Below the pieces are notes generated by a model. It did not search any database, had not been told where the DNA came from, and worked only from the letters and a program-made list of their open reading frames with translations. Made by a program: the position numbers and the translations under genes. Below are positions 3,480 to 49,179 of a stretch of DNA of 64,000 bases, piece by piece. Each line of letters starts with the position of its first letter. Position 1 is the stretch's first letter. The DNA is from Eukaryota sp. TZLM1-RC (lineage: Eukaryota; Protista; Metamonada: BaSk clade): positions 1,466,624-1,530,623 of the forward strand of contig JAUPSS010000007.1 in assembly GCA_040285825.1 (NCBI GenBank), given 5' to 3'.

Positions 3480-4200
3480 TGGCATAGTTTTCATTTGAAA
3501 TCCCCATTTCTTATATGACAAAAAGACTCCACACTTGACAAAAAATCTTTGAATTGTAATTTCCATATGAGTGTTTTAAAACGCTGTTGAATGTTATTGT
3601 GTTTTCACACTTTCTGTGAAAACATGCTTATGCACATGCGATACAAGGCAGGTTTGATGCATAAAGAAATGATTTTTGTATTCTGTTTCACTGACAATCT
3701 TGAAAACAACAATGTATGTACTGAAAAGAATACTGTTCAATGAAACTTTATTACGAAAGAATCTACATCAAGAAGAAATTGGGTAGAATATCTATTTCCA
3801 GGGGCCACATTACATCTCATGTTTTTGAATATGTAAATGCTGCTACAATAAAAGTGTGTCAATTACATATTATTCAAATACTGGAAACTATTTGAATTAT
3901 TTTAAACAATTGGTTTGTTGCTCCAAGTGAAGAAGCAAAGGGAATCCAGTACCCATTAGTTAAGAGAGTTGCCAAGGTGATGGAGGAAATAATTCTAGTT
4001 GTATTTTGTAATAAATTATAATTATAATTTATACACTATTGAATATCCAATCAGTTTTTTTTTCTTAAAAAATTGAAGAATAGTTGAAATAATTCTGGCT
4101 GTTTAAAATCAGTCATGAGTGGAAATCGATGACTTCGTTTAAGAAGTGAGTGAATCTGGATCTATTAATACAATACCAAAGAAATGATCTGCGACTGAGG
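3480..4200 (+). mobile_element. Highly degenerate DNA transposase relic, possibly hAT
   Basis: LLCFHT (CxxH-like), YPLVKRVAK and LKSVMSGNRxLRL resemble hAT catalytic and dimerisation motifs; 3585-3780 recurs inverted at about 13527-13735. Confidence 0.35.
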
Positions 4201-4757: not shown

Positions 4758-6290
4758 TCAATCAAACACCTTGTTGACGTCAGCAATCAAATCTGATAGA
4801 TTGAGCTTGGTAGGTGGTTCCTCATGACATAACTGGTCAACTTGAGACAGTTGACCAAAATTACCATCAAAAATTGATTTGATAACAAATTCTCTCCCAA
4901 AAAACCGAATGAATTTTTTAATTATAGTTTTACAAATAGTTAATTGTTGAACAACTTGACTTTCTTCGAAATTTTCAAAATTACCTGTTTGTGTCGAGAT
5001 CTCTACTGAATGCAGAGCAGTCGAAATCCCCCTTGAAAATTTCTTCTTGTCAAACACAACATTCGCCCATCCACCAAAAAACTCTCTCAAAATTTTATTG
5101 AACATTTTCTTTTTGCTTTGCAAATATTTGAGCTCAATTATCGAATTTGTTATTGGAATTTTGGCTTTTTCTAAATTATTATCATTATTGAGTTTTTTCT
5201 TGAAAACCAAACTCCAAGTTGAAAAATGTCTCTTTTTCAAATACTGGAAATTATTTCGCTTGATGATGGAAAATTTCCGAAAAATTACTAAATTATCAAA
5301 ATAGCATCGCCAATTTAAAAGTGAATTGTGTTGAAATTTTTCATTATTTAAATCAAAATATCTACAGTTCAGCTCATTAAGTGCTTGACCAGCCAAGACC
5401 AAAGGGCCAGAAACAGCAGGACTACGGTCATAAAAGGAAGTAAACATGGTCTGATTAACTTGCTGAGACTGTATCACGTCATCTTTAATTTTTTTGAACC
5501 TTTGTTCTGACCGTGATAAAAGACCGCGTTTATTTTGTTTTGAATCACTAGTGAGTTGTTGCCAATGAGAAAAATATAATTTCATTATTTTAAAAAACTG
5601 TTGGGAAATGAATGATTCTAAATTTAACATCTGAAAATGAACAAAGACCGATCGATCGGAAATTTTGGTTGGTAGGTCATGATTAGTCAACAAAGAGCTC
5701 ATATCGTCTTTTACAGAGTCATTGTCAAAATTTGATCCAAAATTTGGTGGTTTTATCAGCGACCTCCATTTACAAAAAACACTAGATTTAAAATTAATAA
5801 ATTTAATAATTAATTGAAAATCTTTAATTAAATCAGAATAGTAATTGAACAAATGAATCCACTTATAGAAATAAGGCGAAAGAATGGACAAATCACCATC
5901 GTATGACGTGGCATCATGAGCTGATGACGTAATCTGTAATGACTTTTGAGAATTCGTATCAACCAAATTAGACAAAGTGCTGATTGTGTCAGAAATTGTT
6001 TCAAAGGTTTGTTGTAGATGCAAAGCTTCACCAGGATTTCTGTTAGCAAAGCTTTTCCTTCTGAAAGGTTTGGATCTTGGCGTAGAGAGTGCATGTTTGT
6101 GAGAAGGGGACTGTTGGTTGGAATGGGACGTGCGAGGGGTCCGGGGGCTGAGATAACGGCTCTTGATGGACTGGAATCGTGCAGATGAAGGAACATATGG
6201 AAGCAATGATGATGTCTTTGGTGATAAAAGAGGAAGCTTGGGAAGTGTAGGACTACACTGTCTCTGGTGAATGATATCTTCAATAGTCAT
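4758..6290 (-). CDS. Hypothetical protein with Sfi1-like (centrin-binding) Trp repeats
   Basis: 510-aa ORF; S/P/R-rich N-terminus; spaced FxxW motifs (FCKWR, YFSHW, HFSTW, FFGGW). Confidence 0.55.
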   Translation of the reverse strand: MTIEDIIHQRQCSPTLPKLPLLSPKTSSLLPYVPSSARFQSIKSRYLSPRTPRTSHSNQQSPSHKHALSTPRSKPFRRKSFANRNPGEALHLQQTFETISDTISTLSNLVDTNSQKSLQITSSAHDATSYDGDLSILSPYFYKWIHLFNYYSDLIKDFQLIIKFINFKSSVFCKWRSLIKPPNFGSNFDNDSVKDDMSSLLTNHDLPTKISDRSVFVHFQMLNLESFISQQFFKIMKLYFSHWQQLTSDSKQNKRGLLSRSEQRFKKIKDDVIQSQQVNQTMFTSFYDRSPAVSGPLVLAGQALNELNCRYFDLNNEKFQHNSLLNWRCYFDNLVIFRKFSIIKRNNFQYLKKRHFSTWSLVFKKKLNNDNNLEKAKIPITNSIIELKYLQSKKKMFNKILREFFGGWANVVFDKKKFSRGISTALHSVEISTQTGNFENFEESQVVQQLTICKTIIKKFIRFFGREFVIKSIFDGNFGQLSQVDQLCHEEPPTKLNLSDLIADVNKVFD

Positions 6291-6524
6291 TACAATTGTG
6301 AGGTGTCATTAGGTGTGGTGGGGGAACCAGAAAATAATCTGAGTCAAATTCTGCTGCAAATCATTCTCAATTCAATTCTATTGCTGAGATTCAACCCATG
6401 TTAAATTGATCTGATAGTATTTATAATCTAAGTTCGTTTGTTGGTTTAAATCATAAACTCTTCAAATTAATATTTAAAGAATTGAATATTTAATTGGGCA
6501 ATAGCTGAAATCGATAGAATGTTG

Positions 6525-7190
6525 TGCCTCACTACGACTTTCACTTTAGCAACATCTGTTCTACAAATTTATGACAATCTCTACTGATTCTGTCTGAACG
6601 TTGAATATGAGATTTCTAGGTATGAGATATGAGATTTATGGACTAATAACTTACCTCATAATTTTCTTAATGAATTTGAAAAATTACAACTACTCATTTG
6701 TTAAATTGTAAACACTTTATTACTTTTAAAAGCCGGGTTCACGATGATGTCAGAGTTCAATTATATTGTATGTGCACGTCTCATAGAATTGAATCTTTTT
6801 TAGAACCTCTGCTGTCAAATCTGTTTGATGCTGAAGATGATTTTCACCAGAATGATAGAAATGATTTCATATTAGCTGGATCAATGGAACCTTAATACTG
6901 ATGTGAAACTTTTTAAAATTGGTGCAAAACAGATATCGCTACGTCTTTCACTTTAGCAACAACCGTTTCACGAATTTTTGACAATCTCTACCGATTCTGT
7001 CTGGACTTTGAATATGAGACTTCGTACTTTTAATTGTAAACATTTTAAAGCAAGGTTGACGCTGCTGTAAGAGACCAATTAGATTGTATGTGCAAGTCTC
7101 ATAGACTTAAAACCTTTTTGAAACCTCTGTTGTCAAATCTGTTTGATGCTGAAGAAATTTTCCACACGACTAATAGAGGTGATGTCATAT
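6525..7190 (+). mobile_element. Two tandem degraded fragments of family A non-LTR retrotransposon (CCHC/REL region)
   Basis: HLLNCKHFITFKSRVHDDVR...LEPLLSNLFDAEDDFH matches 31070-31260; the segment occurs twice. Confidence 0.8.
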
Positions 7191-8858
7191 TATATTATAT
7201 GTCATATTATACCTCAATATTGTTGTGTGTGCAAAACAGATATAGAGGTTTATGAAAATAATGTGATGTTCATTGATGCGACGATAGTACATGTGGAAGG
7301 TCTGTATTCCTTTGCGGAACAAATCTAGATACAAAATTGTCCTGAACATTGGCTAAAATGTGTGAACCCTATGAACATCATCTGGATGATTTGCTTTGTT
7401 TGCTGGGTTATTGAGATGTTGATCTATAAGATGTTCAATGGCTTCCAAACTTGTTATCAGTAATTCTCCTGTTCCTTCCATTAACTTTGAAGAATCATGT
7501 TTTTGTTAATTCGTATTATTAGATATTTGTTTCTCTTTTTAAGTATTGATGAATATCGAGATCAACTGTCATCTCTTTAACCGAAGTTTGAACAAAACCG
7601 TTCGGTTTTTCTTATTCAGAATTTTTTCTTTTCTCCAAACTTGTTATTCAAGAAAACTGACCCATATTTTAGCAGTTCACATTGCCATCTATTGAATTTT
7701 ACAAAATTTTCAACAAAAAAGAACAAATTTCTTAACCAATTTTCTTTTCCTCAATTCGTCATTTTGCTGAAATCATATTTTTGTAGCATCGAATTAGCTG
7801 GTCTAGATTTTTGCAAATCCACAAATTAAGGATAGTTTATTGATAGATGTAAAAATTTCATTCTCAAATTGCAAAACGTTCGTTTGAAAAAGCAGGTTGA
7901 TATTGCTTGTTTAGTTTCATCGTAGAGTGAAATTGTGATGAAAAATTTGTAACACATTCTCAGTATCACTCATCTTATTGATCCGGTTAAGTTTGATGGC
8001 AATGTCAATTCGTGCTTGTGCGACACAATTACTGCACATCATTACTGTAAGTAACTCATAAGTTACACCATGTTTACCATTTACCGAATTTCACTTTTAC
8101 GATGTTTTTCGGGGCCAAACGAACCCTGCATTTTGTGTCATTGTATAGCTGACATAAATTAGATTTTACCCCTGCTATTCAAGCTAATTTTCGTATGGCA
8201 ATTTCCAAATGTTCGTCTTTCTCACAGAATCAATAACCAAATCGCACTGGTACTGTCAATTGGCTACTATAAAAGACACAATATGATGTTTATTGCATTT
8301 AATTTGCACTATTAGCATTGTAGAAGAACGAAAGTCTTGAATTGTTTGGTCGATTACCTGAATCTCCAGCAAAAACTGTTGCATTGTTGGAGAAGCAGTG
8401 TCTGAAGCTAATCGCCATAGTTGTTTCCTTTCATTATTAAACAAAGTTAGTAATTGCAAAAGCGAGAAATGAATGAGCCTCAGTTTTATAAGTAGATTGC
8501 TGCTTTCCTATTTTGAACAAAAAAAGTAACGGTTGACTATTTTAGTACAAATTGAACGAGAAGGCCCTTTTTTATTATTATAAGACTGGTAGACTCGCCG
8601 AAAATGAGAAGGCACATTGTATGTTCTCAATCACTATCAGAGTCCTGACATAGTTTTTAACTTTTATTCCATAATAATACAACTATTAAAAAACAATTAA
8701 ATTTGATTACGAAAACCAAGTTCATAAACTGTGATGTCAATATTTTAATTTTCCAGAACTTGGAAGAAGAAGATTTATTTATTTACTTAAATGGTAAATC
8801 CAAACAAAACAATACTTACAAAAAGATTTATTATCCAATAAACCGAAACAAAAAACCT

Positions 8859-10977
8859 CTAAAAAACTCTCAAGTCGCGAACTTCATTAATAATGTCAAA
8901 GGCCTTTCTTAAAACCGAAAGTCTCTCGTTCAGAGCTTTTCTTCTTGCCGCCACCTCAGGATCTTCAGCTAGCAACTGCTCAAACATATCTTCCTTATAA
9001 AGATATTGAACTAACTCATTTTGCAGTGTTTCCTTAGTCTCATTAATCAAAAATGCCATAATTGTTTTGGGAACAGTATCACGAACTTTCTTTGCGACCA
9101 ATGTGAAATAAGATTCCAAAAGCCTTCCAATTAGCTCAGTTGCCATGTGTTCATGATCCCCCAAAGGTCCCGTTAGTTTAAGAGAAGAAGGAACTTCATC
9201 TGTCGATGTTGACTGTCTTCTTGATTTTGATGACGTAGCAGGTGGAGAAGTTGACTGTTTTGAACCAAAAAAGCCAAATATTCCTGAACTACTTGCATCA
9301 ACCTGCTGTTTTGGTTCTGGTTTTGCATTTTTTGATTCCTTCTTTGACCCACTATTTGGTGGAGCAGGTTCACTGGCTTGTTGTCGACTCTCAACTTTTT
9401 GATCAACCAAAGAATTAATTGCACCAGAGGCCCCCAAAAAATCAGGATGATTAGTATTGACATATGCCAACTCAATTTTAATCAAATCAGAAATCATTTT
9501 CTTAGTGGGAGTCAAGCACTTTCTCAACAGACTTCCAGCGACTTCTAATATCCGCTCAGTCAGATACGTGAATCTTTTCAGCTCGGCACTTGGACATTGT
9601 TGAGTGATTCTGAGCAACTCATGATAAACAAGTTCAACAATCCTAAGAGCTGGTGACTCTAGTCTAGAAATTTGACGCTTAACTAATAATTCAAATGATT
9701 CTTCAGGAATGAACAAAGAAGTCCTAGGTCCCGTCGCATTTCGTATGGCAGTTCTTATATCTTCACGTTTCAGTTCATCATTAGAAGCAACTTTCTCTAT
9801 TTGTCTAGCCAAAATGTCATGAAAGACATAAGCAATACGAGCACCACCATAAAGTTCATTTGTAGCCACATCAGAGAGCTTGCCATCTATTGAAGCATTG
9901 AAATCAGTGGCATAATTGGTAAGCAACTTTAACAACAACGCGCCCTGATTATGACTTCCCACCAATTCTTCCCCGCCTAGATTCTTCAGCTCATCATTTA
10001 CAGAATTCAACATTTGTCTGACTTTGTCTTTAATCGAAGGTAAAGTTTCATGTATGTGGTTCATTAGAATGTAGTTGAGGGCTTTTGCTAGGAAAGGTGT
10101 GCCTAGTTTGTTTGCAATTGTTCTATATTTGGGATGGTTTTGAAAGAACTTTGCTTCATCCTTGAGTGCTTCAGATATATTCTTATCAGTGCTTATGTCT
10201 GCCTGAGAACGATTCACAACCCCCACAAATCCTAATCTTAACTGTACCACTTTCCCGGTAAGGATATCCAAAGCATCTGTGCCCTGGTCCATAATGTCAA
10301 GTTTCGTGATAACACCCAAAGTCCTTTTCCCTTCTGGATCCACGTGTCTGGCTAGTTGGAGGGCGTCAGAGTTCGCGAGGTCCTGGTTAGCAGCTGAGAC
10401 AGCGAGGATGATGGCATTTGGTTTCTGAATGTAGTGTAGGACCAAGTTTCGAATCTGTTGCTCAATATCAGCAGGTTGGTCATCAATGGCAATCTTGGTG
10501 ACACCAGGAGTATCTACAAGAGTCAGCGGGACAACACGAGGAGAAAAGATCTTGAGGTTGATGGGAACAGGTGAAATGGCCTTGCCTTTACCTAAGAGTC
10601 TTGTGGTCTCAGCAGCTATTTCATCCCGTATAGCAGAAAAGTCACGGTATACCTGGTCTGGACGGTGAAGAAAAACACCATATTCCTCACCTGTGCTTGG
10701 GATGAGTTGAAGGATAAGAGGTCTTCTGGTACAGATACCACTACCACGAGGTAGGAATGAGGCTTGGCAGATGTTTTCGAGAACAGAAGACTTGAATTAG
10801 GGGTAAAAGTGGGAAACAAACCTTACCGGAACTTTGAGAGCCAATAACGACAATTTGAGGGAGATCAATGTATGATTCCACACCCACTGAAGTAAAGATG
10901 TCTTGGAGCTTGTTAATTACAGGTATAAGTTTTTCCATTCCAGTAAAAGTGCGAGCATCAGACTTGGATTTGGACAT
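8859..10977 (-). CDS. Dynamin-related GTPase (Dnm1/Drp1/Vps1 type, no PH or PRD domain), about 695 aa; exons 10977-10822 and 10790-8859
   Basis: [14 protein letters not shown]|SSVLE P-loop joined across a 31-nt intron (GTTTGT...CTAATTCAAG, 10791-10821); [28 protein letters not shown]-terminal GED. Confidence 0.95.
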
Positions 10978-11084
10978 GGTGAAAAAGGCCTAGTATAAGG
11001 ATATGAAGTGAGTTGTTGCGAAGCAGAAGTCCTTGAAGGTTCGTAGAGCTGATTTTGTCAGAGTAAACCCTGCAAACTTTTTGA

Positions 11085-11199
11085 TCATCTGTGAATTTCA
11101 TCGGAAATGCATACATCATGTAGCATTCCTCCATTCCCTTATACGGTTTCCTTTTCAGGATCACAGCGCCCGAAGGCAATACATGGATACAAACAACTA
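11085..11199 (-). ncRNA. Candidate Fanzor omega-RNA scaffold
   Basis: Directly after the Fanzor stop codon: GCC-UUCG-GGC (11168-11177), UCCU-GAAA-AGGA (11149-11160), GGAAUGC...GCAUUUCC stem (11103-11129), closed by CUGUGA/UCACAG (11161-11166 with 11089-11094). Confidence 0.6.
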
Positions 11200-12900
11200 T
11201 CACTCTCTCACCTCCCTTCTAAATGTCTCTGGTCTGATCCCAGTAAAATGTTCAGAAATCGCAATCTCTAGCTGATTTCTTGAAGCGGAAATGTCACTAG
11301 ACCAGCGTTCATCACATCTAGGACATTCAAAGTAAGCATTATTGATTCTTCGAGTATCTTCATGATACACCTTCCTGTGATGTACCTTGCAACAATTGGT
11401 TTTGGCAGATGTCATGTATTCATCTCCAACCTTCACATTGGCAAAGTATTTCTTTACTTCTGTCAGAAACTTCTTAGTTGGGGCTTTGGTGGATTTTCGA
11501 GAAGGTCCATTACCACCATTACCAAACCAAATAATAGTTTCCCTGTTATTAGCTAGTCTCTTAATTTTGTTCACAAAATGAATGAACCTTTTTTGTCTTC
11601 TTATCACAAAATCTTATTTCGTCTCAAAATTCTCTCTGTACTATTGGTCAAACCAAAGAAATTGTTTACTGCTCATCATTCCTTATCAGTGAAGCTATTT
11701 CAATGAGATACCTGTTGAAGCTCTCAACGGAATAAGTGTTCACAGAGGATTGAGTGAGTGGCTGGGGAAAATCAATTACTTTTGCTTTCGGATTCAGTAG
11801 AATTCCAGATTGTTCAACAATTACCCTATTCTCTTGTGAACAATGTCCAGTTGTCCAACCACATAAATTTGAATGGTTTGGATCAACCGCCACGAAAAAA
11901 AGGTCTTCTCTGATGGGAAGATCCTGCGAGCAATCTTGAGACCGTCTAGCAATTTTCCTCGGTCGGTTAGCTCGCCCATTTATTCTCTTATTTCGTTTTC
12001 TAGTGGACTCTCTGAAATAAGGACGACTTTGACCCAATGCTTGAATTTCAGAATTTTTTCGCCTGGTGCACGTCTTTTTGGGTTTCTTTGAAAAAGTGAA
12101 GCGCAATGAGAGTCCATTGCTAGAAACTGAGAAAGTTTTGAATTTTTTCTTGTTAAAAAACTTAAAAGGGTTCCGTAATAATTGTTGGTTAGGATTCAAT
12201 TTTTTGAAATATTCCAGAGCTTGTTGATTAAAAGGAACAAACCCTGGAACTTTGGTGGCAATTGGGGATAAGGCATGTCTTCGAAATACATTTGGGCATG
12301 TACTTTCTAGACGATGTAAAATTGACAATCCCCAATGGCTTATCAACCAACAATTATAAACAGTGACATCCAATTCATCACGCCTCAGGGCACGCGTAAA
12401 CAAATCATTAGATGTTACTGTTTGGTTCCAAATTTCGGAAATATGAAAATGATATTCATCATACCATTGTCTTAAATTTTCAGAAATTGTGGAACCGCAA
12501 ACCACACAACTGGCATACTTTGATGGAGCAGGACACTCCATCAGAACATTAGAGACTTATGTTGAAACAAGAACTTTTTCAAATAGTTGATGAATGGTGG
12601 TTTGTAATTGTCATATTTTAGACAATGCATTCACATAAAATGAAACAGAATAATGTGGACTTGAAAAGAGTGTCTCATTGATTACTAACGGTATTGGCAA
12701 CAAAGGAAAAAAGGGAATGATATTGTTTCCTTATCCAAATTGAGCAGATCATTTCATTTGTTCATTTGATTAAGGATCTCCTGAAGTTGAGTAAGTTGAA
12801 TCGTGGAAGTTTTCAAATGTGTTGATTCCAGGAATTCTGCTGTGAATTTCACTCCTGTTTTCAACTTTCTCAATGTCTTCTCACAGGCTGCAAGAGACAT
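11200..12900 (-). pseudogene. Fanzor1 (TnpB-related RNA-guided RuvC nuclease), compact type, disrupted
   Basis: RuvC-I FVAVDPN, IIWFGNG...KAP, RuvC-II GDEYMTS, CC...CPRC zinc finger, RuvC-III WSSDISASRN, terminal RPETF. Frameshifts at about 11607-11670 and stops in 12541-12900 (candidate ATG at 12900). Confidence 0.85.
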
Positions 12901-13982
12901 GTAGCGTCATTTGACAAAGACAATCATGATCTCCATCAATGGGCTACCTCACTTAAATACACCTACTGCTTTCACAGAACAAAGCCTCGCGACTTGATGT
13001 ATCTAAGTGGATCTACCAAATTTTACTAAGCTATTTGTAGATCGGTCTCAAAAGTTTTTGTTTTTGTATGCTCAGGATATCTATTCATCTCCTCAACAGA
13101 GCTTTTGGGCAAATGTATCTTTCCGGCCACAATTCCGCTTTTTTCTTAATTTAAATATTTTTTGCAGCGGAAATATCTCTGTCATATACTATTTTCAATG
13201 TCAAAATTGGAAAATCTGAAGTTTGAAACCAGACCCAAAATCTGATCTTCCAACCTGAGCAACCTTCTGCGGTCTTTCTCATTTCCGTACTCCGACTTTG
13301 GGATGCATCTGTAACTTCACACACATGATACTCTTAGTGTCATGATTCGGGGACAGAAGGGTAGACATCACGATTGCCATCAGTTCAGCAGCCTTGCCTA
13401 ACGCATCTTGGATTTCTATTCCGTAAATCCTGTACCTATCGGTTATTGTAAGTGTTTCGTTTGACTCAATCACTTTTTTGATCTCAATGTTCATGGATTG
13501 GCTTGATGTCTTCACCGTTGTACTTTCTTCTTGATGTAGATTCTTCCGTTATAAAGTTTTACTGGACAGTATTTTTTTCAGTACATACATCATCTTTTTT
13601 GCCAACACTATTGTTTTCAAGATTGCCATTGAAACATAATACATAAATCATTTCTTCATGTATCAAACCTGCCTTGTATCACTTGTGCATAAGCATGTTT
13701 TTATTGAAAGTGTGAAAACACAATAACATTCAACTTATAAGAGTAACTGTCCGTCATAAAAAGGCATTTCAATGGCGACTTGTTTCACTACTTTTTTGGA
13801 CTGGATTTTTAATCAATTTTGTAGCACTAGCGGTGGATGGACAGATTCTAGATGAATTTGACAATTTTCATTGATCACGCACCTGAATATCGTAAGCGTT
13901 GAGCTGACAAATTTCCAAACATTTACCTAAAAAATAATGAAAAGTTTTACAATCGCACATAGAGAATCAAGTTTGACATAAC

Positions 13983-14400
13983 ATGAGTCAATTCAACAGT
14001 GATTCAAAGAAATGGCTGCCGATACTATCTGAATTCGACTTTGATATAGTCCATGAACCAGGTGAAGATAAGCACTGGGCAGATATGCTATCAAGGAATA
14101 TTGATTTAGATCAAAACGAGGAAACTCCTTATATCTGTATTATAAAAATACCAGATACTTTACTTTCGAATTACGAGATACTTCCACTAGACAATAATTC
14201 TTATTCGGACTTCGAAGATATCCCATCAATCTCATCTCTAAGTAGACACCAGGACCTTCCTATTGTTTCTTCTTGGTTCTCTAAAATAAAATCTGAACAA
14301 CAAATAGCCACAAAAAAAGACCCTCTATTTGAGAAAATGCAATTTTAGATGAAAATACTCAAATTTGGAGAAATAAAAAAATACAATTTTAATTCCAAAA
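13983..14400 (+). mobile_element. Ty3/gypsy LTR-retrotransposon pol relic (RNase H end to integrase linker)
   Basis: KWLPILSEFDFDIVHEPGEDKHWADMLSR matches the RW..L.EFDF.I.H.PG..N..AD.LSR motif. Confidence 0.75.
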
Positions 14401-14419
14401 AGCCGTGAAAATCATCCTC

Positions 14420-14772
14420 ATCATCAAACAGATTTAACAACAGAGGTTCCAAAAAGGATTCATTTCTATGAGACTTACACATACATTATAAATGGTCTCT
14501 TACAACATCATGAACCTTGCTTCTAAAAGTAATTAAATGTTTACAATTTAACAAATGAGTAATTGTAATTTCTCGAGAACATTTACAAATTAAATTATGA
14601 GGTAAGTTATCAGGCCAGATAAGGGAACGAAGTCTCATATTTAGAGTCCAAGCAGAATCGGTTAAGAGAGTACCATAAACTTGAGAAATTGTTGTTACTA
14701 AGGCAGAAGAAGTACTGTCACACATATCTTGTAAAAGATTTGCAAGAGCGGGATTCTTTTTCTTGGCCAAGC
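14420..14772 (-). mobile_element. Family A non-LTR retrotransposon internal fragment
   Basis: LAKKKNPALANLLQDMCDSTSS...HLLNCKH...VHDVVRD is nearly identical to 30860-31210. Confidence 0.9.
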
Positions 14773-15224
14773 GAATTTCTATTTCTCAAAATTGACACAA
14801 TTAAGACAAAATTTATGTCATTTTGCCACTATGTCCTGCAAACAAAACTGAGGAATACTCTGACAAGAATAAGTTACATCATTGATGTATGTAAGTTACC
14901 TACATACGGTTCTTATTGATTGAGTCAAGTGAAGTTGTCCTTCAAATTTCAGTGTAAATGATGTGAATGAAAGCCTACTTGTCAGAAAACTTTTTATTTA
15001 CAAACTAAGAATGAAAAACGAACATTAAAAATTTTCATCAAACACTAGACAAAACAATAGTCAATTTTGTCAAATAAATCCAGACCTTCAAAACCATCAA
15101 GTTGCCAAAAATGCCTACATTAAACGGTGTAATTAGTCTGGGTATTAAATACTCTGGAGCAAGCTAAGTTTTTGAGTCGTTTTTAAGCATGTCAATTTTT
15201 GAAATAAATTGTCTCAAATATATA

Positions 15225-20068: not shown

Positions 20069-20665
20069 TGACATTGTTTTCAATATGGCACAAACTGCAA
20101 GAATATCGCGTATCAAAGAGCCTCTGCTGAAGGAAACACTTTCTCTGAATAATTTTGGTTCTGATGATAGAGGTGATGTATACTGTGATTGGATTGATAA
20201 TTCTGAAGCTATTGTTGACTTTGTCTCATGTAATGTTGCAAATGATGCTTTGGTTCACAGAAGAAAACTCAATCCTGTGAGTGCTCTTGATTTTAAAGCA
20301 AATGAAAAACACAGAAAATGAGATAAAGATATTGAAGAGGCTAATGCTGATAGAAATACACAGCTGGTCTTTATTGCTTTCCCATTTTCGATAAATGGAA
20401 GATTATCAGCCGAAGCAGGAAATTTTTTGAATGACTTCCAAAAAATGGTCCAAGAAAAAACAATGAAAAGATTTGACATTTTTTTATGGCGTTCACGGAT
20501 TCAATTTGCCATTATTAATAGATTACCTCGGTTTTTCAATCGAATGAGACAAGTTTTAGCTAGAGAGCAATCAGATCAAGATTTTGTAGAGGAAATTTTG
20601 GTTCAATGATAGTCGTCCCATTTGTTATGAGTTAATTTAATTAAGTGTGCAAATTCAATAAATGA
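20069..20665 (+). mobile_element. 5'-truncated family B non-LTR retrotransposon (REL domain and 3' UTR)
   Basis: KEPLLKE...RGDVYCDW...VDFVSCNV...AFPFSINGRL; same 3' tail (ttaagtgtgcaaat..aataaa) as 58761-59368. Confidence 0.9.
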
Positions 20666-37744: not shown

Positions 37745-38500
37745 TATTCAGGATGAGGAGTTTTCTGTGACCATGTAGTGTGCCAAATGATTTGATTTGT
37801 CGTTGTGGTCAGCTCATTAATCTGAATCATTCATTTAATTGCAAATTTAATAAAACATATCGCTCAGTTGTTCACGATGCTGTTAGAAACCAACTATACG
37901 CTATGTGCAAAAGTCATCACAGTGAAGCTTTTGTTGAACCACTTGTGCGAAGGTTGTCATCTGAAAATGAAGATGAAAATACTTTTGGGAAACGCCGTGC
38001 TGATTTAATTACCCCTGCGTCTGATGGTGTTATTAAAGTTGTTGATGTTGTCACTGTTGATGTTTGTAAAAACTCAGCAATTGATTTTGCTAAAGGAGAT
38101 GAAACTCTACTTTGCATTGCTGAAAAGAGCAAAATCAAAAAGTACAATGAACCCTTATCTCAGCTAGGGCGTGTTGAGCATGTCAAGTATCAGTTGGTTC
38201 CATTTGCTGTTTCTCTTTTTGGTAACATTGGAATATCTGGAAATTTCTTGAAGGTTTCAGAAGTTTAATGAAAGGAAAGAGCAGGGAAAGAATCGACTAA
38301 ATTTCTAAATTTCTGGCACAATAGAATTGTTTTCAGTATTCTTAAAGCAATTCCAGAAATGTTGACCAAAGCACTGTTACAATTAGGAATAGAGTATGAA
38401 AATCGCGCGCTAAAAAGATTTGATGATGTTGATGCGTGTATTGAGGATATTGAGTTCTAGTTTTTTGTTTAATGTTTTCTTAGCGTTGAAAATCAATTTC
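37745..38500 (+). mobile_element. 5'-truncated RT-REL non-LTR retrotransposon (family C-related)
   Basis: CRC...HSFNC, VHDAVRN, RRADL...VVDVVTVD...KIKKY, PFAVSLFG; ends attgagttctag like the copy ending near 57450. Confidence 0.88.
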
Positions 38501-41500
38501 AATTTAGAAAATAGCTTAAAATAGATTTAATAGCTTGACGGTATTTAGTCAAAGAAAACAAACACTACAAGGAACTGATGCTGATAAAAGTAATTGGTAT
38601 AGTTTTTAACATAGTTGTTTATCTTCTTTTGATTATTTGAATACAATTTTTTATTTATCGAATGAGCAAGAAACTATTATCAAGGACTACCACTTGCAAA
38701 AGTCTGTTCCTACAGGAACTGATTACTATGCGTAGCGAGTACCAACAGCAATGTCAAGAAGTTAATCAGCTCCCATTTTACACAAAATTTGCAGAGTCCG
38801 TTGCTCTTGCTTTTGTGGAAAACACAAGTCAAGAAATTGCACAAACAATCAAAGGCAATGAAAAAATTGGGGCAGATGGTTCTGAAATAAATCAGAATTC
38901 ATTCATAGATTTTTGTCTAGTAAAACCGAATTTGAGTGTCTTTTATAAGGCTGTTCATGCTAGCGACGAAGGATAAAATGATGACAAAATTATTCAATGA
39001 TGTTATTCAACAAATCGCCCCTACATATATTAATTTCGTTATAACTGATGGAGCTTCTAAAAATTTAAATGCTGCCATCAATCAAGCAAAGAAACCACCA
39101 TATTCGGTTTTCATTGTATTCAGAAAAAACTAATCATTACACTAATTCCCTGGCTTAAAGCAGCACCTATAAAAAGACAAAACACTTACCATTGTTGTGT
39201 AATTCAAGTTGTTACTCCAAATGAAGATAATGGTATGAAGATGTTGCAGAGTGGGAGAGGTATGGATTGGTTGTGCTATTCACACATTAAATTCTTTTTT
39301 AATTCTTTTTATTCTTTTTATTTTTTTTATTCTTTTTATTCTTTTTTCAAAGATAAATGTGCTGCTAATACCAAACAGAAACTTCAATCACTTGAAATGT
39401 TGTTTTAAAAGGCTGCCTTGGTGGTCATTTTCGTGTTAAATAAACCTTTTATTAAGAAGCTGATGAAAAAGAATTGGAGCTCTGAAAAAAAGCAGAAAAA
39501 CAATTTCACTTACAACATTTTTATACACTTTTTTTAATTTTTTTAATTTTTTCCATCAACAACACGTTGACCAAATCTGAGTATAGTAATTAGAATGAAT
39601 GAGTGGACAACGTAAAAAAAGTCGGCTAAAAGTAAATCGATGATGCGTACTTTTTTGTAGACTTTTTGAACTTTTCGCTCATTTTAACCTGGTATTCTCC
39701 CATTAATTCTACCATGAAAGAAGACAGGTGGGATGTTACTTTGTCTTCTGACACATGGCGAATTAACTATGCCTGAGAAGAAACTCGGTAACAATTGAAA
39801 ACCAATAGACTATTGCACTATTATATTATACAATTTTTGTTGTTTTTGTTTGATTCTTTTGTTTCATCAGATGAATTAAATTTACCCGAGTCAATTGGAA
39901 CCTTTTGAACTATTTTGTAGACTTTTTGAGGCCACTCATCATTTTGATGCTGATGCTGGACAGTTTGACGCCAATTATGGGAAAGCTATATCGTCATTTG
40001 GAAATTGAATGTCACCGAATTGGCAGTCAAGAATTGTCAATTATATCAATTGAAGAAAAGAACAGATTGATACAGAGGTTCAAGTTCAGAATCGATCAAC
40101 TTATCAGTGATTCTCACAAAGCTGCTTTCTGTTTAAATCCAGAATTCAGAGATATTGTAACCAAGGCTCAATAGTTTGTATAAATTGTTCGAAGAACAGC
40201 ATGGCATAAATAGAAAAATCCGACCAGTGGTCTGAAAAAAAGTAATAGGGATGGGGCACTTTGAACAGACAGAAGTTTTTCTTACTGCGAATGCCAAGCC
40301 ATGTTTGGTGGTTGGTGGTGTAAGTACAGGAGTCAAACAGACTTGGCTAAGTTAGCAATAAAGCTTCTTAGTGAGTGGTTCCATTTGCTGTTTCTCTTTT
40401 TGGTAACATTGGAATATCTGGAAATTTCTTGAAGGTTTCAGAAGTTTAATGAAAGGAAAGAGCAGGGAAAGAATCGACTAAATTTCTAAATTTCTGGCAC
40501 AATAGAATTGTTTTCAGTATTCTTAAAGCAATTCCAGAAATGTTGACCAAAGCACTGTTACAATTAGGAATAGAGTATGAAAATCGGGCGCTAAAAAGAT
40601 TTGATGATGTTGATGCGTGTATTGAGGATATTGAGTTCTAGTTTTTTGTTTAATGTTTTCTTAGCGTTGAAAATCAATTTCAATTTAGAAAATAGCTTAA
40701 AATAGATTTAATAGCTTGACGGTATTTAGTCAGAGAAAACAAACACTACAAGGAACTGATGCTGATAAAAGTAATTGGTATAGTTTTTAACATAGTTGTT
40801 TATCTTCTTTTGATTATTTGAATACAATTTTTTATTTATCGAATGAGCAAGAAACTATTATCAAGGACTACCACTTGCAAAAGTCTGTTCCTACAGGAAC
40901 TGATTACTATGCGTAGCGAGTACCAACAGCAATGTCAAGAAGTTAATCAGCTCCCATTTTACACAAAATTTGCAGAGTCCGTTGCTCTTGCTTTTGTGGA
41001 AAACACAAGTCAAGAAATTGCACAAACAATCAAAGACAATGAAAAAATTGGGGCAGATGGTTCTGAAATAAATCAGAATTCATTCATAGATTTTTGTCTA
41101 GTAAAACCGAATTTGAGTGTCTTTTATAAGGCTGTTCATGCTAGCGACGAAGGATAAAATGATGACAAAATTATTCAATGATGTTATTCAACAAATCGCC
41201 CCTACATATATTAATTTCGTTATAACTGATGGAGCTTCTAAAAAATTTAAATGCTGCCATCAATCAAGCAAAGAAACCACCATATTCGGTTTTCATATAG
41301 TATTCTATATATTCAGAAAAAAACTAATCATTACACTAATTCCCTGGCTTAAAGCAGCACCTATAAAAAAAGACAAAAACACTTACCATTGTTGTGTAAT
41401 TCAAGTTGTTACTCCAAAATGAAGATAATGGTATGAAGATGTTGCAGAGTGGGAGGTATGGATTCGTTGTGCTATTCACACATTAAATTCTTTTTTTAAT

Positions 41501-44500
41501 TCTTTTTTTATTCTTTTTTTATTTTTTTATTCTTTTTTTATTCTTTTTTTCAAAGATAAATGTGCTGCTAATACCAAACAGAAACTTCAATCACTTGAAA
41601 TGTTGTTTTTAAAAAGGCTGCCTTGGTGGTCATTTTCGTGTTAAATAAACCTTTTATTAAGAAGCTGATGAAAAAGAATTGGAGCTCTGAAAAAAAGCAG
41701 AAAACAATTTCACTTACAACATTTTATACACTTTTTTTTTATTTTTATTTTTTTTTAATTTTGATTGTATACCATCAACAACACGTTGACCAAATCTGAG
41801 TATAGTAATTAGAATGAATGAGTGGACAACGTAAAAAGTCGGCTAAAGTAAATCGATGATGCGTACTTTTTTGTAGACTTTTTGAACTTTTCGCTCATTT
41901 TAACCTGGTATTCTCCCATTAATTCTACCATGAAAGAAGACAGGTGGGATGTTACTTTGTCTTCTGACACATGGCGAATTAACTATGCCTGAGAAGAAAC
42001 TCGGTAACAATTGAAAACCAATAGACTATTGCACTATTATATTATACAATTTTTGTTGTTTTTGTTTGATTCTTTTGTTTCATCAGATGAATTAAATTTA
42101 CCCGAGTCAATTGGAACCTTTTGAACTATTTTGTAGACTTTTTGAGGCCACTCATCATTTTGATGCTGATGCTGGACAGTTTGACGCCAATTATGGGAAA
42201 GCTATATCGTCATTTGGAAATTGAATGTCACCGAATTGGCAGTCAAGAATTGTCAATTATATCAATTGAAGAAAAGAACAGATTGATACAGAGGTTCAAG
42301 TTCAGAATCGATCAACTTATCAGTGATTCTCACAAAGCTGCTTTCTGTTTAAATCCAGAATTCAGAGATATTGTAACCAAGGCTCAATAGTTTGTATAAA
42401 TTGTTCGAAGAACAGCATGGCATAAATAGAAAAATCCGACCAGTGGTCTGAAAAAAAGTAATAGGGATGGGGCACTTTGAACAGACAGAAGTTTTTCTTA
42501 TTGCGAATGCCAAGCCATGTTTGGTGGTTGGTGGTGTAAGTACAGGAGTCAAACAGACTTGGCTAAGTTAGCAATAAAGCTTCTTAGTGAGTGGTTCCAT
42601 TTGCTGTTTCTCTTTTTGGTAACATTGGAATATCTGGAAATTTCTTGAAGGTTTCAGAAGTTTAATGAAAGGAAAGAGCAGGGAAAGAATCGACTAAATT
42701 TCTAAATTTCTGGCACAATAGAATTGTTTTCAGTATTCTTAAAGCAATTCCAGAAATGTTGACCAAAGCACTGTTACAATTAGGAATAGAGTATGAAAAT
42801 CGGGCGCTAAAAAGATTTGATGATGTTGATGCGTGTATTGAGGATATTGAGTTCTAGTTTTTTGTTTAATGTTTTCTTAGCGTTGAAAATCAATTTCAAT
42901 TTAGAAAATAACTTAAAATAGATTTAATAGCTTGACGGTATTTAGTCAGAGAAAACAAACACTACAAGGAACTGATGCTGATAAAAGTAATTGGTATAGT
43001 TTTTAACATAGTTGTTTATCTTCTTTTGATTATTTGAATACAATTTTTTATTTATCGAATGAGCAAGAAACTATTATCAAGGACTACCACTTACAAAAGT
43101 CTGTTCCTACAGGAACTGATTACTATGCGTAGCGAGTACCAACAGCAATGTCAAGAAGTTAATCAGCTCCCATTTTACACAAAATTTGCAGAGTCCGTTG
43201 CTCTTGCTTTTGTGGAAAACACAAGTCAAGAAATTGCACAAACAATCAAAGACAATGAAAAAATTGGGGCAGATGGTTATGAAATAAATCAGAATTCATT
43301 CATAAATTTTTGTCTAGTAAAACCGAATTTGAGTGTCTTTTATAAGGCTGTTCATGCTAGCGACGAAGAATAAAATGATGACAAAATTATTCATTGATGT
43401 TATTCAACAAATCGCCCCTACATATATTAATTTCGTTATAACTGATGGAGCTTCTAAAAATTTAAATGCTGCCATCAATCAAGCAAAGAAACCACCATAT
43501 TCGGTTTTCATATATTATTCTATATATTATATTCAGAAAAAACTAATCATTACACTAATTCCCTGGCTTAAAGCAGCACCTATAAAAAGACAAAACACTT
43601 ACCATTGTTGTGTAATTCAAGTTGTTACTCCAAATGAAGATAATGGTATGAAGATGTTGCAGAGTGGGAGTATGGATTCGCTGTGCTATTCACACATTAA
43701 ATTCTTTTTTCAAAGATAAATGTGCTGCTAATACCAAACAGAAACTTCAATCACTTGAAATGTTGTTTTAAAATGCTGCCTTGGTGGTCATTTTCGTGTT
43801 AAATAAACCTTTTATTAAGAAGCTGAGGAAAAGAATTAGAGCTCTGAAAAAGCAGAAAACAATTTCACTTACAACATTTTATACACTTTTTTTAATTTTT
43901 GTTTATTTTTTTACCATCAACAACACGTTGACCAAATCTGAGTATAGTAATTAGAATGAATGAGTGGACAACGTCAAAAGTCGGCTAAAGTAAATCGATG
44001 ATGCGTACTTTTTTGTAGACTTTTTGAACTTTTCGCTCATTTTAACCTGGTATTCTCCCATTAATTCTACCATGAAAGAAGACAGGTGGGATCTTACTTT
44101 GTCTTCTGACACATGGCGAATTAACTATGCCTGAGAAGAAACTCGGTAACAATTGAAAACCAATAGACTATTGCACTATTATATTATACAATTTTTGTTG
44201 TTTTTGTTTGATTCTTTTGTTTCATCAGATGAATTAAATTTACCCGAGTCAATTGGAACCTTTTGAACTATTTTGTAGACTTTTTGAGGCCACTCATCAT
44301 TTTGATGCTGATGCTGGACAGTTTGACGCCAATTATGGGAAAGCTATATCGTCATTTGGAAATTGAATGTCACCGAATTGGCAGTCAAGAATTGTCAATT
44401 ATATCAATTGAAGAAAAGAACAGATTGATACAGAGGTTCAAGTTCAGAATCGATCAACTTATCAGTGATTCTCACAAAGCTGCTTTCTGTTTAAATCCAG

Positions 44501-47500
44501 AATTCAGAGATATTGTAACCAAGGCTCAATAGTTTGTATAAATTGTTCGAAGAACAGCATGGCATAAATAGAAAATCCGACCAGTGGTCTGAAAAAGTAA
44601 TAGGGATGGGGCACTTTGAACAGACAGAAGTTTTTCTTACTGCGAATGCCAAGCCATGTTTGGTGGTTGGTGGTGTAAGTACAGGAGTCAAACAGACTTG
44701 GCTAAGTTAGCAATAAAGCTTCTTAGTGAGTGGTTCCATTTGCTGTTTCTCTTTTTGGTAACATTGGAATATCTGGAAATTTCTTGAAGGTTTCAGAAGT
44801 TTAATGAAAGGAAAGAGCAGGGAAAGAATCGACTAAATTTCTAAATTTCTGGCACAATAGAATTGTTTTCAGTATTCTTAAAGCAATTCCAGAAATGTTG
44901 ACCAAAGCACTGTTACAATTAGGAATAGAGTATGAAAATCGGGCGCTAAAAAGATTTGATGATGTTGATGCGTGTATTGAGGATATTGAGTTCTAGTTTT
45001 TTGTTTAATGTTTTCTTAGCGTTGAAAATCAATTTCAATTTAGAAAATAGCTTAAAATAGATTTAATAGCTTGACGGTATTTAGTCAGAGAAAACAAACA
45101 CTACAAGGAACTGATGCTGATAAAAGTAATTGGTATAGTTTTTAACATAGTTGTTTATCTTCTTTTGATTATTTGAATACAATTTTTTATTTATCGAATG
45201 AGCAAGAAACTATTATCAAGGACTACCACTTGCAAAAGTCTGTTCCTACAGGAACTGATTACTATGCGTAGCGAGTACCAACAGCAATGTCAAGAAGTTA
45301 ATCAGCTCCCATTTTACACAAAATTTGCAGAGTCCGTTGCTCTTGCTTGTGGAAAACACAAGTCAAGAAATTGCACAAACAATCAAAGACAATGAAAAAA
45401 TTGGGGCAGATGGTTCTGAAATAAATCAGAATTCATTCATAGATTTTTGTCTAGTAAAACCGAATTTGAGTGTCTTTTATAAGGCTGTTCATGCTAGCGA
45501 CGAAGGATAAAATGATGACAAAATTATTCAATGATGTTATTCAACAAATCGCCCCTACATATATTAATTTCGTTATAACTGATGGAGCTTCTAAAAATTT
45601 AAATGCTGCCATCAATCAAGCAAAGAAACCACCATATTCGGTTTTCATTGTATTCAGAAAAAACTTATCATTACACTAATTCCCTGGCTTAAAGCAGCAC
45701 CTATAAAAAGACAAAACACTTACCATTGTTGTGTAATTCAAGTTGTTACTCCAAATGAAGATAATGGTATGAAGATGTTGCAGAGTGGGAGAGGTATGGA
45801 TTGGTTGTGCTATTCACACATTAAATTCTTTTTTAATTCTTTTTATTCTTTTTATTTTTTTTATTCTTTTTATTCTTTTTTCAAAGATAAATGTGCTGCT
45901 AATACCAAACAGAAACTTCAATCACTTGAAATGTTGTTTTAAAAGGCTGCCTTGGTGGTCATTTTCGTGTTAAATAAACCTTTTATTAAGAAGCTGATGA
46001 AAAGAATTGGAGCTCTGAAAAAGCAGAAAACAATTTCACTTACAACATTTTATACACTTTTTTTAATTTTTTTAATTTTTTTTCCATCAACAACACGTTG
46101 ACCAAATCTGAGTATAGTAATTAGAATGAATGAGTGGACAACGTAAAAAGTCGGCTAAAGTAAATCGATGATGCGTACTTTTTTGTAGACTTTTTGAACT
46201 TTTCGCTCATTTTAACCTGGTATTCTCCCATTAATTCTACCATGAAAGAAGACAGGTGGGATGTTACTTTGTCTTCTGACACATGGCGAATTAACTATGC
46301 CTGAGAAGAAACTCGGTAACAATTGAAAACCAATAGACTATTGCACTATTATATTATACAATTTTTGTTGTTTTTGTTTGATTCTTTTGTTTCATCAGAT
46401 GAATTAAATTTACCCGAGTCAATTGGAACCTTTTTGAACTATTTTTGTAGACTTTTTGAGGCCACTCATCATTTTGATGCTGATGCTGGACAGTTTGACG
46501 CCAATTATGGGAAAAGCTATATCGTCATTTGGAAATTGAATGTCACCGAATTGGCAGTCAAGAATTGTCAATTATATCAATTGAAGAAAAGAACAGATTG
46601 ATACAGAGGTTCAAGTTCAGAATCGATCAACTTATCAGTGATTCTCACAAAGCTGCTTTCTGTTTAAATCCAGAATTCAGAGATATTGTAACCAAGGCTC
46701 AATAGTTTGTATAAATTGTTCGAAGAACAGCATGGCATAAATAGAAAAATCCGACCAGTGGTCTGAAAAAAAGTAATAGGGATGGGGCACTTTGAACAGA
46801 CAGAAGTTTTTTTCTTATTGCGAATGCCAAGCCATGTTTGGTGGTTGGTGGTGTAAGTACAGGAGTCAAACAGACTTGGCTAAGTTAGCAATAAAGCTTC
46901 TTAGTGAGTGGTTCCATTTGCTGTTTCTCTTTTTGGTAACATTGGAATATCTGGAAATTTCTTGAAGGTTTCAGAAGTTTAATGAAAGGAAAGAGCAGGG
47001 AAAAGAATCGACTAAATTTCTAAATTTCTGGCACAATAGAATTGTTTTCAGTATTCTTAAAAGCAATTCCAGAAATGTTGACCAAAAGCACTGTTACAAT
47101 TAGGAATAGAGTATGAAAAATCGGGCGCTAAAAAAAGATTTGATGATGTTGATGCGTGTATTGAGGATATTGAGTTCTAGTTTTTTGTTTAATGTTTTCT
47201 TAGCGTTGAAAATCAATTTCAATTTAGAAAATAGCTTAAAATAGATTTAATAGCTTGACGGTATTTAGTCAGAGAAAACAAACACTACAAGGAACTGATG
47301 CTGATAAAAAGTAATTGGTATAGTTTTTTTAACATAGTTGTTTATCTTCTTTTGATTATTTGAATACAATTTTTTATTTATCGAATGAGCAAGAAACTAT
47401 TATCAAGGACTACCACTTACAAAAGTCTGTTCCTACAGGAACTGATTACTATGCGTAGCGAGTACCAACAGCAATGTCAAGAAGTTAATCAGCTCCCATT

Positions 47501-49179
47501 TTACACAAAATTTTGCAGAGTCCGTTGCTCTTGCTTTTTGTGGAAAAACACAAGTCAAGAAATTGCACAAACAATCAAAGACAATGAAAAAAATTGGGGC
47601 AGATGGTTCTGAAATAAATCAGAATTCATTCATAGATTTTTGTCTAGTAAAACCGAATTTGAGTGTCTTTTATAAGGCTGTTCATGCTAGCGACGAAGAA
47701 TAAAATGATGAAAAAATTATTCAATGATGTTATTCAACAAATCGCCCCTACATATATTAATTTCGTTATAACTGATGGAGCTTCTAAAAATTTAAATGCT
47801 GCCATCAATCAAGCAAAGAAACCACCATATTCGGTTTTCATATATTATTCTATATATTATATTCAGAAAAAACTAATCATTACACTAATTCCCTGGCTTA
47901 AAGCAGCACCTATAAAAAGACAAAACACTTACCATTGTTGTGTAATTCAAGTTGTTACTCCAAATGAAGATAATGGTATGAAGATGTTGCAGAGTGGGAG
48001 TATGGATTCGCTGTGCTATTCACACATTAAATTCTTTTTTAATTCTTTTTATTCTTTTTATTTTTTTTATTCTTTTTATTCTTTTTTTAATTCTTTTTAT
48101 TCTTTTTTTATTCTTTTTATTTTTTATTCTTTTTTTATTTTTATTCTTTTTTTCAAAGATAAATGTGCTGCTAATACCAAACAGAAACTTCAATCACTTG
48201 AAATGTTGTTTTAAAAGGCTGCCTTGGTGGTCATTTTCGTGTTAAATAAACCTTTTATTAAGAAGCTGGTGAAAAAAATTGGAGCTCTGAAAAAGCAGAA
48301 AACAATTTCACTTACAACATTTTATACACTTTTTTTATTTTTTTTTATTTTTTTCTAGTTTGAATTGTATACCATCAACAACACGTTGACCAAATCTGAG
48401 TATAGTAATTAGAATGAATGAGTGGACAACGTAAAAAGTCGGCTAAAGTAAATCGATGATGCGTACTTTTTTGTAGACTTTTTGAACTTTTCGCTCATTT
48501 TAACCTGGTATTCTCCCATTAATTCTACCATGAAAGAAGACAGGTGGGATGTTACTTTGTCTTCTGACACATGGCGAATTAAGTATGCCTGAGAAGAAAC
48601 TCGGTAACAATTGAAAACCAATAGACTATTACACTATTATATTATACAATTTTTGTTTGATTCTTTTGTTTCATCAGATGAATTAAATTTACCCGAGTCA
48701 ATTGGAACCTTTTGAACTTTTTTGTAGACTTTTTGAGGCCACTCATCATTTTGATGCTGATGCTGGACAGTTTGACGCCAATTATGGGAAAGCTATATCG
48801 TCATTTGGAAATTGAATGTCACCGAATTGGCAGTCAAGAATTGTCAATTATATCAATTGAAGAAAAGAACAGTTTGATACAGAGGTTCAAGTTCAGAATC
48901 GATCAACTTATCAGTGATTCTCACAAATCTGCTTTCTGTTTAAATCCAGAATTCAGAGATATTGTAACCAAGGCTCAATAGTTTGTATAAATTGTTCGAA
49001 GAACAGCATGGCGTAAATAGAAAATCCGACCAGTGGTCTGAAAAAGTAATAGGGATGGGACACTTTGAACACACAGAAGTTTTGTTTACTGCGAATGCCA
49101 AGCCATGTTTGGTGGTTGGTGGTATAAGTACAGGAGTCAAACAGACTTGGCTAAGTTAGCAATTAAGCTTCTTAGTGAG
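38195..49179 (+). repeat. Five-copy head-to-tail array of a 2.14-2.27 kb unit (LINE 3' end plus degenerate hAT transposase)
   Basis: Units begin at 38195, 40376, 42592, 44731 and 46909 (tggttccatttgctg); identical cttagtgag|tggttcc junctions. Confidence 0.95.

Follow-up and report, generated by a model that had tools for sequence, protein, structure and literature searches.

The 111 non-coding bases that follow a decayed Fanzor gene on the minus strand of a contig of Skoliomonas litria TZLM1-RC (11089-11199) are probably the right-end module of a Fanzor1 element, encoding an omega-RNA, whose nuclease has decayed. Their position, orientation, boundary and architecture point to a template for an omega-RNA scaffold, and the stretch fits the handle expected of a Fanzor guide RNA, not a new kind of RNA. 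The sequence comes from assembly GCA_040285825.1, contig JAUPSS010000007.1; the window, as we use the word, is the whole 64,000-nucleotide stretch analysed, and all positions refer to it unless a fetched locus is named. Species name and strain follow PMC11603281, and we found no paper in the literature in which Fanzor and Skoliomonas appear together.

From two tetraloop-capped minus-strand hairpins directly past the Fanzor stop codon, a first-pass annotation had proposed an omega-RNA scaffold here. Its stems and its two tetraloops do lie where it placed them, in the sequence as well as in RNAfold predictions, yet the fold of this single sequence is at chance level, so that a real observation could not, from the sequence alone, carry the interpretation given to it. 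Paralogue alignments support reading the stretch as the right end of a Fanzor1-type element, non-coding and in the sense orientation. For the proposed scaffold itself, position, strand, boundary and shared end speak in favor, whereas the inner stems lack comparative support and the local nuclease gene is dead.

Sequences and comparisons

Comparative DNA consisted of 12 fetched loci, comprising S. litria paralogues and relatives from TZLM3-RCL, the deepest-branching Skoliomonas isolate (PMC11603281), and from GEM-RC. The window copy is denoted W, the fetched loci L002, L003 and so on, and the Fanzor families or subfamilies B1-B4, A and TZ3a-c. Fanzor ORF pieces were used as separate protein queries and never merged across stops. 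Arms of the closing stem described below were compared by script; MAFFT-based alifold split or misaligned the 5′ arm, which made its pair counts unusable. Fold z-scores were computed with RNAfold against dinucleotide shuffles. The features of the locus are collected in Table 1.

Table 1. Features of the Fanzor right end and its surroundings in the window
Feature	Position	Strand	Basis or remark
Fanzor1-type nuclease pseudogene, subfamily B1	11200-12541	-	Pfam TNB, paralogues, AF2 model of a relative
ORF pieces of 291 aa and 135 aa	11669-12541; 11203-11607	-	B1 pseudogene
Fanzor stop codons in tandem, TGA TAG	11202-11200 and 11199-11197	-	Sequence
Unpaired leader with UGUUUGUAU...AUGUAU	11179-11196	-	Alignments A1 and A6; partly kept in B1-B4
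First hairpin, UGCC-UUCG-GGCG	11167-11178	-	Basal CC/GG and flanks homologous to the base of the B2 hairpin
First-hairpin core, GCC, UUCG, GGC	11177-11175; 11174-11171; 11170-11168	-	U.G 11178/11167 extends the stem
CUGUGA, 5′ arm of the stem that closes the terminal domain	11161-11166	-	CUGAGA where the 3′ arm is UCUCAG
Second hairpin, UCCU-GAAA-AGGA	11149-11160	-	B1 and its near-identical copy only
Third hairpin, 27 nt, GGAAUGCUACA-UGA-UGUAUGCAUUUC	11103-11129	-	Written GGAAUGC...GCAUUUCC in the first-pass annotation; contains UAUGCAU
Right-end motif GAAATTCACAG	11089-11099	-	Final 6 nt UCACAG (11094-11089) are the closing-stem 3′ arm; element end 11089
Flank, guide-equivalent if the RNA continues	11069-11088	-	Unrelated to the L002 flank; inside the dynamin leader/promoter region
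Start codon of dynamin-family host gene	10975-10977	-	Same strand, 111 nt past the element end
Tail of unrelated Fanzor remnant, family A	12840-13150 (311 nt)	-	Ends GTGAAATTCACAG; same closing stem
Family A ORF pieces	13154-13515	-	End ...DRDISAAKNI*

The nuclease gene and its family

The 135-aa ORF piece matched the Cas12f1-like TNB domain of Pfam (E = 1e-4) and, as a query, retrieved four paralogue clusters in the S. litria genome, 63-93% identical to it. Alignment also located the D, zinc-finger and RDIS motifs in the window ORF pieces. Full-length relatives of 548-605 aa were found in S. litria, Skoliomonas sp. TZLM3-RCL and GEM-RC1; among the TZLM3-RCL proteins, 90% clusters held eight of 592 aa and four of 604/605 aa, and P0022 and P0024 had TNB scores exceeding the Pfam cut-off. 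The AF2 model of one intact relative (P0022, 592 aa, TZLM3-RCL; pLDDT 80) had SpuFz1, PpFz1 and GtFz1 as its best PDB matches with E values near 1e-15, compared with about 1e-3 to 1e-4 for Fanzor2 and TnpB. Judged by this model, the protein family is Fanzor1.

The gene in the window is a pseudogene. Compared with full-length relatives it has lost ~160 aa from the N-terminus (alignment A4), and comparison with its closest copy, L002, reveals a TAA at 11668 where L002 reads GAA, along with deletions of 10 nt at 11654 and 4 nt at 11614; with the 5′ truncation, the stop and the two deletions, an intact partner nuclease is absent from the same element. The L002 gene retains the N-terminal part but carries four other frameshifts. 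Since both the window gene and its only close copy are pseudogenes, the window copy is probably a relic. A candidate left end of the element at the start codon (12542, with an ATGGAG...CTCCAT palindrome) was rejected, because L002 continues in frame further upstream and full-length relatives have the additional ~160 residues; 12542 is a truncation point, and the window copy no longer has the genuine B1 left end.

The element boundary

From 12542 to 11089 the window and L002, which lies on another contig, are 96.5% identical over 1474 aligned columns. The alignment ends with ...TTCACAG at 11089, and from the next base on the two are unrelated, the window reading ATGATCAAAAAG... and L002 reading TTTTACTTTAC.... 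On these alignments the predicted scaffold/guide boundary is 11089|11088, within 4 nt of the guide start at about 11085 that the first-pass annotation had predicted, and the sharp drop in conservation it expected at that boundary is plainly present, with no identity past 11089. The same end recurs in B2, whose protein is 67% identical: its copies in L003, L006, L008 and L009 all stop at a homologous ...GAAATTCTCAG, and with L007 included the B2 copies have five different flanks after the homologous end. In L007 the B2 tail is deleted between GCTG and AAATTCTCAG, with the final 10 nt kept before a flank of its own (3486-3496).

On the left, homology between L003 and L009 continues for at least another 1 kb in the upstream direction and fixes no left end for B2. 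No inverted GAAAWWCWCAG, the end motif described below, was found upstream of any element in the fetched loci, nor was a classical pair of terminal inverted repeats. The terminal inverted repeat search in the window returned weak 24-nt matches only (71%), and the weak inverted repeat 10980-11003 / 12558-12581 was rejected as the element ends, as it falls outside the conserved element. Apart from a 12-nt end motif at 12840-12851, repeat searches and blastn/tblastn found no copies of the tail or the gene in the 64-kb window.

Architecture of the right end

The RNAfold minimum-energy fold of the tail contains all of the helices listed in the first-pass annotation, with the UCACAG at the element end pairing with CUGUGA 72 nt upstream. 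Across the families compared, the tails share a common plan of an unpaired leader, a first hairpin and a stem-closed terminal domain, and sister tails are clearly more stable than shuffled sequence, with z-scores of -3.6 to -4.6 for B2, -3.8 for TZ3a and -2.3 for L002. The first hairpins of B1 and B2 are homologous in their flanks and basal CC/GG (GUAUUKCC ... GGYGCUGWGA), and the UUCG of B1 sits where the 30-nt B2 hairpin has 26 further nucleotides. Because the basal pairs and flanks are homologous, the UUCG tetraloop, by this comparison, caps a helix that is shortened but conserved in position.

The GAAA hairpin and the third hairpin are specific to B1 and were absent from the other families compared. 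The two tetraloops, which had been offered as a sign of selection on RNA structure, are likewise features of the subfamily and do not by themselves make that case. The CAUGUA/UACAUG pairing suggested as an alternative or pseudoknot has no counterpart in other families, and an AUGUAU/AUGCAU variant of it was dropped after none appeared in B2 or TZ3a. Overall, with too few independent copies for statistics, what is kept is the closing stem together with the first hairpin's base, and the inner helices are unshared. No known non-coding RNA family was matched in Rfam 15 at E values up to 1 on either strand of 9000-15000.

Read as an omega-RNA, the scaffold would begin with a short leader, continue through a shortened first hairpin capped by cUUCGg and finish in the stem-closed terminal domain.

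A terminal motif and closing stem shared across lineages

The end motif GAAAWWCWCAG is common to related Fanzor1 families of S. litria and Skoliomonas sp. TZLM3-RCL. Family A ends in it in both the window and L002; in TZLM3-RCL, the 592-aa family ends in GAAAAACACAG and the 604-aa family in GAAATCCACAG, and in a very divergent 526-aa Fanzor GAAAATCTCAG overlaps the stop codon. No recognisable end motif was present at the comparable place in the GEM-RC relative (L011).

In all of the families with this end (six lineages), the terminal 5-7 bases have a pairing partner located 47-83 nt upstream. The resulting closing stem is CUGUGA/UCACAG in B1 and A, with an extra G.U pair in A; CUGAGAA/UUCUCAG in B2; CUGAGA/UCUCAG in TZ3c; CUGUG/CACAG in TZ3b; and UUGUG/CACAG in TZ3a, where a C-G pair has become a U.G wobble. 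In B2, which lies inside the B clade, and in TZ3c, a remote lineage, the fourth pair is changed on both sides from U-A to A-U. As a control, 4.2% of randomly chosen positions in these loci had a 6-nt Watson-Crick stem anchored on the end. Persistence of the stem across these sequences appears mostly to reflect common descent; the compensatory change argues for constraint, on the basis of one pair position in few lineages. Of the annotated tail, related families retain the end and the closing stem, with one compensated pair.

Two further sequence recurrences were noted. UAUGCAU occurs 17-24 nt before the end in B1 (window 11106-11112), TZ3a, TZ3b and TZ3c, in one case within coding sequence, and is not consistently helical across these four divergent families. 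In addition, GAAATACACAG was found at window positions 20363 (+), 59067 (+) and 62825 (-) and at L006 6526, inside another dispersed repeat family; the sequence following it is conserved, so no element ends there.

Genome context

The tail of the family A remnant lies upstream of the B1 element in the window, and a copy of it that is 88% identical lies upstream of the L002 element (L002 1569-1890), so two Fanzor right-end modules stand in tandem in both loci. A solo GTGAAATTCACAG is present 15 nt past the family A end in L002 (1906-1918). Ten of the 13 right ends with a defined boundary are located 5-111 nt upstream of the start codon of a host gene on the same strand.

The L009 locus contains an inverted duplication of the whole B2 element together with a flanking WD40 host gene (5344-7826 on the minus strand and 9503-11982 on the plus strand), and a third copy of the B2 right end and flank at 1-78; from the sequence, the B2 insertion is duplicated together with the host gene. 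In L004, a B3 Fanzor fragment is immediately preceded, on its own strand, by an ORF with a MULE transposase domain (507-2795).

Several features of the host genes were also recorded. Introns measure only 25-34 nt and carry a CTAAY-like branch motif that is separated by a few bases from the final ...CAG (window 10791-10821, minus strand; L009-L012), and a TTTGTTT-type motif directly follows the stop codon of most host genes (window, L009-L012). Within ~20 nt after each of the TZLM3-RCL histone genes in L010 (16774-19145) and L012 (126-437), we found GGTGTTTTTCAACAC, a 5-bp stem with a UUUC loop that resembles the histone mRNA 3′ stem-loop. Elsewhere in the window, five tandem units of ~2.2 kb occupy 38056-49179 and are mostly 95-100% identical, and an 84-nt tandem repeat lies at the window start (54-641).

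Alternative explanations

IS200/IS605 elements have subterminal hairpins that are read by TnpA, and in TnpB elements a single end serves both guide-RNA and mobilisation roles. By analogy, the terminal hairpin and GAAAWWCWCAG could be mainly a DNA signal for recognition or cleavage by a trans-acting mobilising enzyme, with RNA structure of secondary importance. This is the leading alternative; it is compatible with an omega-RNA-encoding module, but we consider it unlikely. As in IS200/IS605, a hairpin stands at the element end, and lineages keep it whatever their nuclease: the same end and stem are found in the B clade, family A and TZ3c, which are too divergent for a co-evolved scaffold, and the terminal 10-13 nt persist alone in L007 and at the solo end of L002. 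The elements are mobile, to judge by their different flanks, without a transposase of their own in the loci seen; those same loci, however, offered no HUH/Y1 candidate, only the MULE ORF adjoining one fragment, and the element ends have no inverted copy of the motif upstream. The Skoliomonas stem extends to the last base, whereas that of IS200/IS605 stops several nucleotides short of the cleavage site. Strand preference in folding is divided: B1 and B2 fold about equally well in sense and antisense, so that their folds do not tell RNA structure from DNA structure, and the L002 copy of family A folds better in antisense, whereas TZ3a, TZ3b, B3, B4 and the window copy of family A fold better in sense, with G.U pairs. 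The U.G wobble in the TZ3a closing stem would be a mismatch in DNA. In a two-tail consensus of family A, all 8 changed pairs stay paired and substitutions fall in 9 of 168 paired columns versus 19 of 154 others; the antisense consensus looks similar, so this comparison does not discriminate between sense and antisense.

A related and more doubtful suggestion concerns what reads the end. That Fanzor lineages with barely alignable proteins have it in common is unexpected under co-evolution of each protein with its own scaffold and suggests that another factor reads it; the paired GAAAWWCWCAG end, common to very divergent Fanzor1 lineages of at least two Skoliomonas species and usually placed shortly before a same-strand host start codon, may, tentatively, be recognised by a common factor instead of by each Fanzor. 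A mobilising enzyme acting in trans could be that factor, as could a step of host RNA processing or one akin to splicing.

It is improbable that the stretch is simply a 3′ UTR or terminator of the Fanzor gene, now serving also as leader or promoter of the dynamin gene, with hairpins that stabilise or end the transcript. The leader has UGUUU right after the Fanzor stop, the same type of motif that follows most host genes in these loci, and it may be an mRNA 3′-end signal, in which case the Fanzor mRNA might stop before the hairpins; the frequent location of right ends just upstream of host start codons also agrees with such a role. Host 3′ regions that were examined, however, lack comparable terminal stems or the end motif, conservation ends exactly at the stem and element boundary and not at a poly(A)-type site, and in TZ3c the stem and end motif lie inside the coding region, overlapping the stop codon.

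Quite improbable, in our estimation, is that the B1-specific stems are chance helices in neutrally decaying DNA, with only the last ~11 nt and their pairing partner functional. The folding z-score against shuffled sequence, which had been put forward as a check, is about -1 and at chance level (-0.91 for the 115 nt annotated, -1.1 from stop to end, -0.16 for 281 nt). None of these stems occurs in B2, B3/B4, A or the TZLM3-RCL families, and both B1 copies are pseudogenes, 3.5% different from each other. Against chance, the first hairpin stands exactly at the position of the B2 hairpin with homologous basal pairs, and the differences between the W and L002 tails, although few in number, all avoid the stems: two are substitutions in the leader and the third is a 5-nt insertion or deletion in the loop of the third hairpin, longer in L002, with the stem unaffected. 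Over both strands of the window (128 kb) we counted 3 hairpins in which a 3-bp stem carries UUCG and 47 in which a 4-bp stem carries a GNRA loop, and one of each type lay no more than 40 nt apart only at this place, compared with ~0.09 expected by chance, which is mildly unusual.

Finally, in a highly improbable reading, the ...YCWCAG end mimics the 3′ splice site of the host, and splicing would remove the element or its end from read-through host transcripts. It draws on the 25-34 nt host introns that end in ...TCACAG, ...CCTCAG or ...CTCCAG and on a GUAUGC in B1 that is located 26 nt before the end and would give a mini-intron of host size. Comparison with those introns led to its rejection: no suitably placed GU is conserved in B2, TZ3a or TZ3c, the one GU that is shared is lost through the compensatory U-to-A change in the 5′ arm, and no CTAAY branch motif precedes the end.

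Comparison with known systems

The preferred reading, a right-end module encoding an omega-RNA, agrees in several respects with SpuFz1 and PpFz1 (PMC10432273; PMC11423790). As in those systems, a non-coding module in the sense orientation occupies the interval from the Fanzor stop codon to the right end of the transposon, a scaffold is followed by a copy-specific flank, a first stem-loop and a variable second domain precede the guide position, and the modelled protein family has the Fanzor1 fold. In the solved Fz1 omega-RNAs, a first stem-loop of 7 bp is followed by 1-3 variable stem-loops before the guide (PMC11423790); the first hairpin of B1, by comparison, has 4 bp. The putative Skoliomonas scaffold further differs in measuring 108-111 nt from stop to end versus 75 nt, in lacking a pair of terminal inverted repeats, in placing its last bases in a nested closing stem and in being accompanied locally by a dead nuclease gene.

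The right end of TnpB elements of the IS200/IS605 and IS607 types similarly encodes the scaffold of the reRNA or omega-RNA, with the guide lying beyond the end (PMC10711439). Five nucleotides adjoining the TnpB guide pair with an upstream loop (PMC10711439), and nucleotides flanking the putative Skoliomonas guide likewise pair with an upstream segment; the TnpB pairing, however, is a pseudoknot with a loop, whereas the Skoliomonas pairing is a predicted nested closing stem. The Skoliomonas elements also differ in having no TnpA in the loci seen, a eukaryotic host and a Fanzor1 protein architecture. A right-end module without a working nuclease recalls Ghost Spu-1, which has no ORF and keeps its ends (PMC10432273), and it is resembled in this respect by the copies in the window and L002, by the family A tail and by the solo ends of L002 and L007; unlike Ghost Spu-1, these are decayed or truncated copies and not a uniform ORF-less family with both ends.

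A predicted guide RNA and its significance

We infer that RNA would be produced from such a module, bound by a Fanzor and supplied with the adjoining flank as its guide. Transcription beyond 11089 would add the flank from 11088 onward, and with the 14-15-nt variable extension that acts as the guide in SpuFz1 (PMC10432273) as an analogy, the guide might be 14-15 nt or more in length. This guide-equivalent flank falls within the 111-nt leader of the dynamin gene (ATG at 10977). Among the copies seen, none would supply a cognate protein from the same subfamily for any RNA made here.

Fanzor guide RNAs have been experimentally defined in only a few organisms. The locus and its paralogues offer a clean, sequence-defined candidate for the scaffold/guide boundary and, for a metamonad clade of Fanzor1 whose full-length genes are multi-copy in TZLM3-RCL, a conserved stem next to the predicted guide. 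The direct value of the window relic is as a marker of that boundary and as another instance in which a Fanzor end serves as the leader upstream of a housekeeping gene. If a common factor does read the shared end, it would represent a mode of spread or domestication that has not been described for OMEGA systems.
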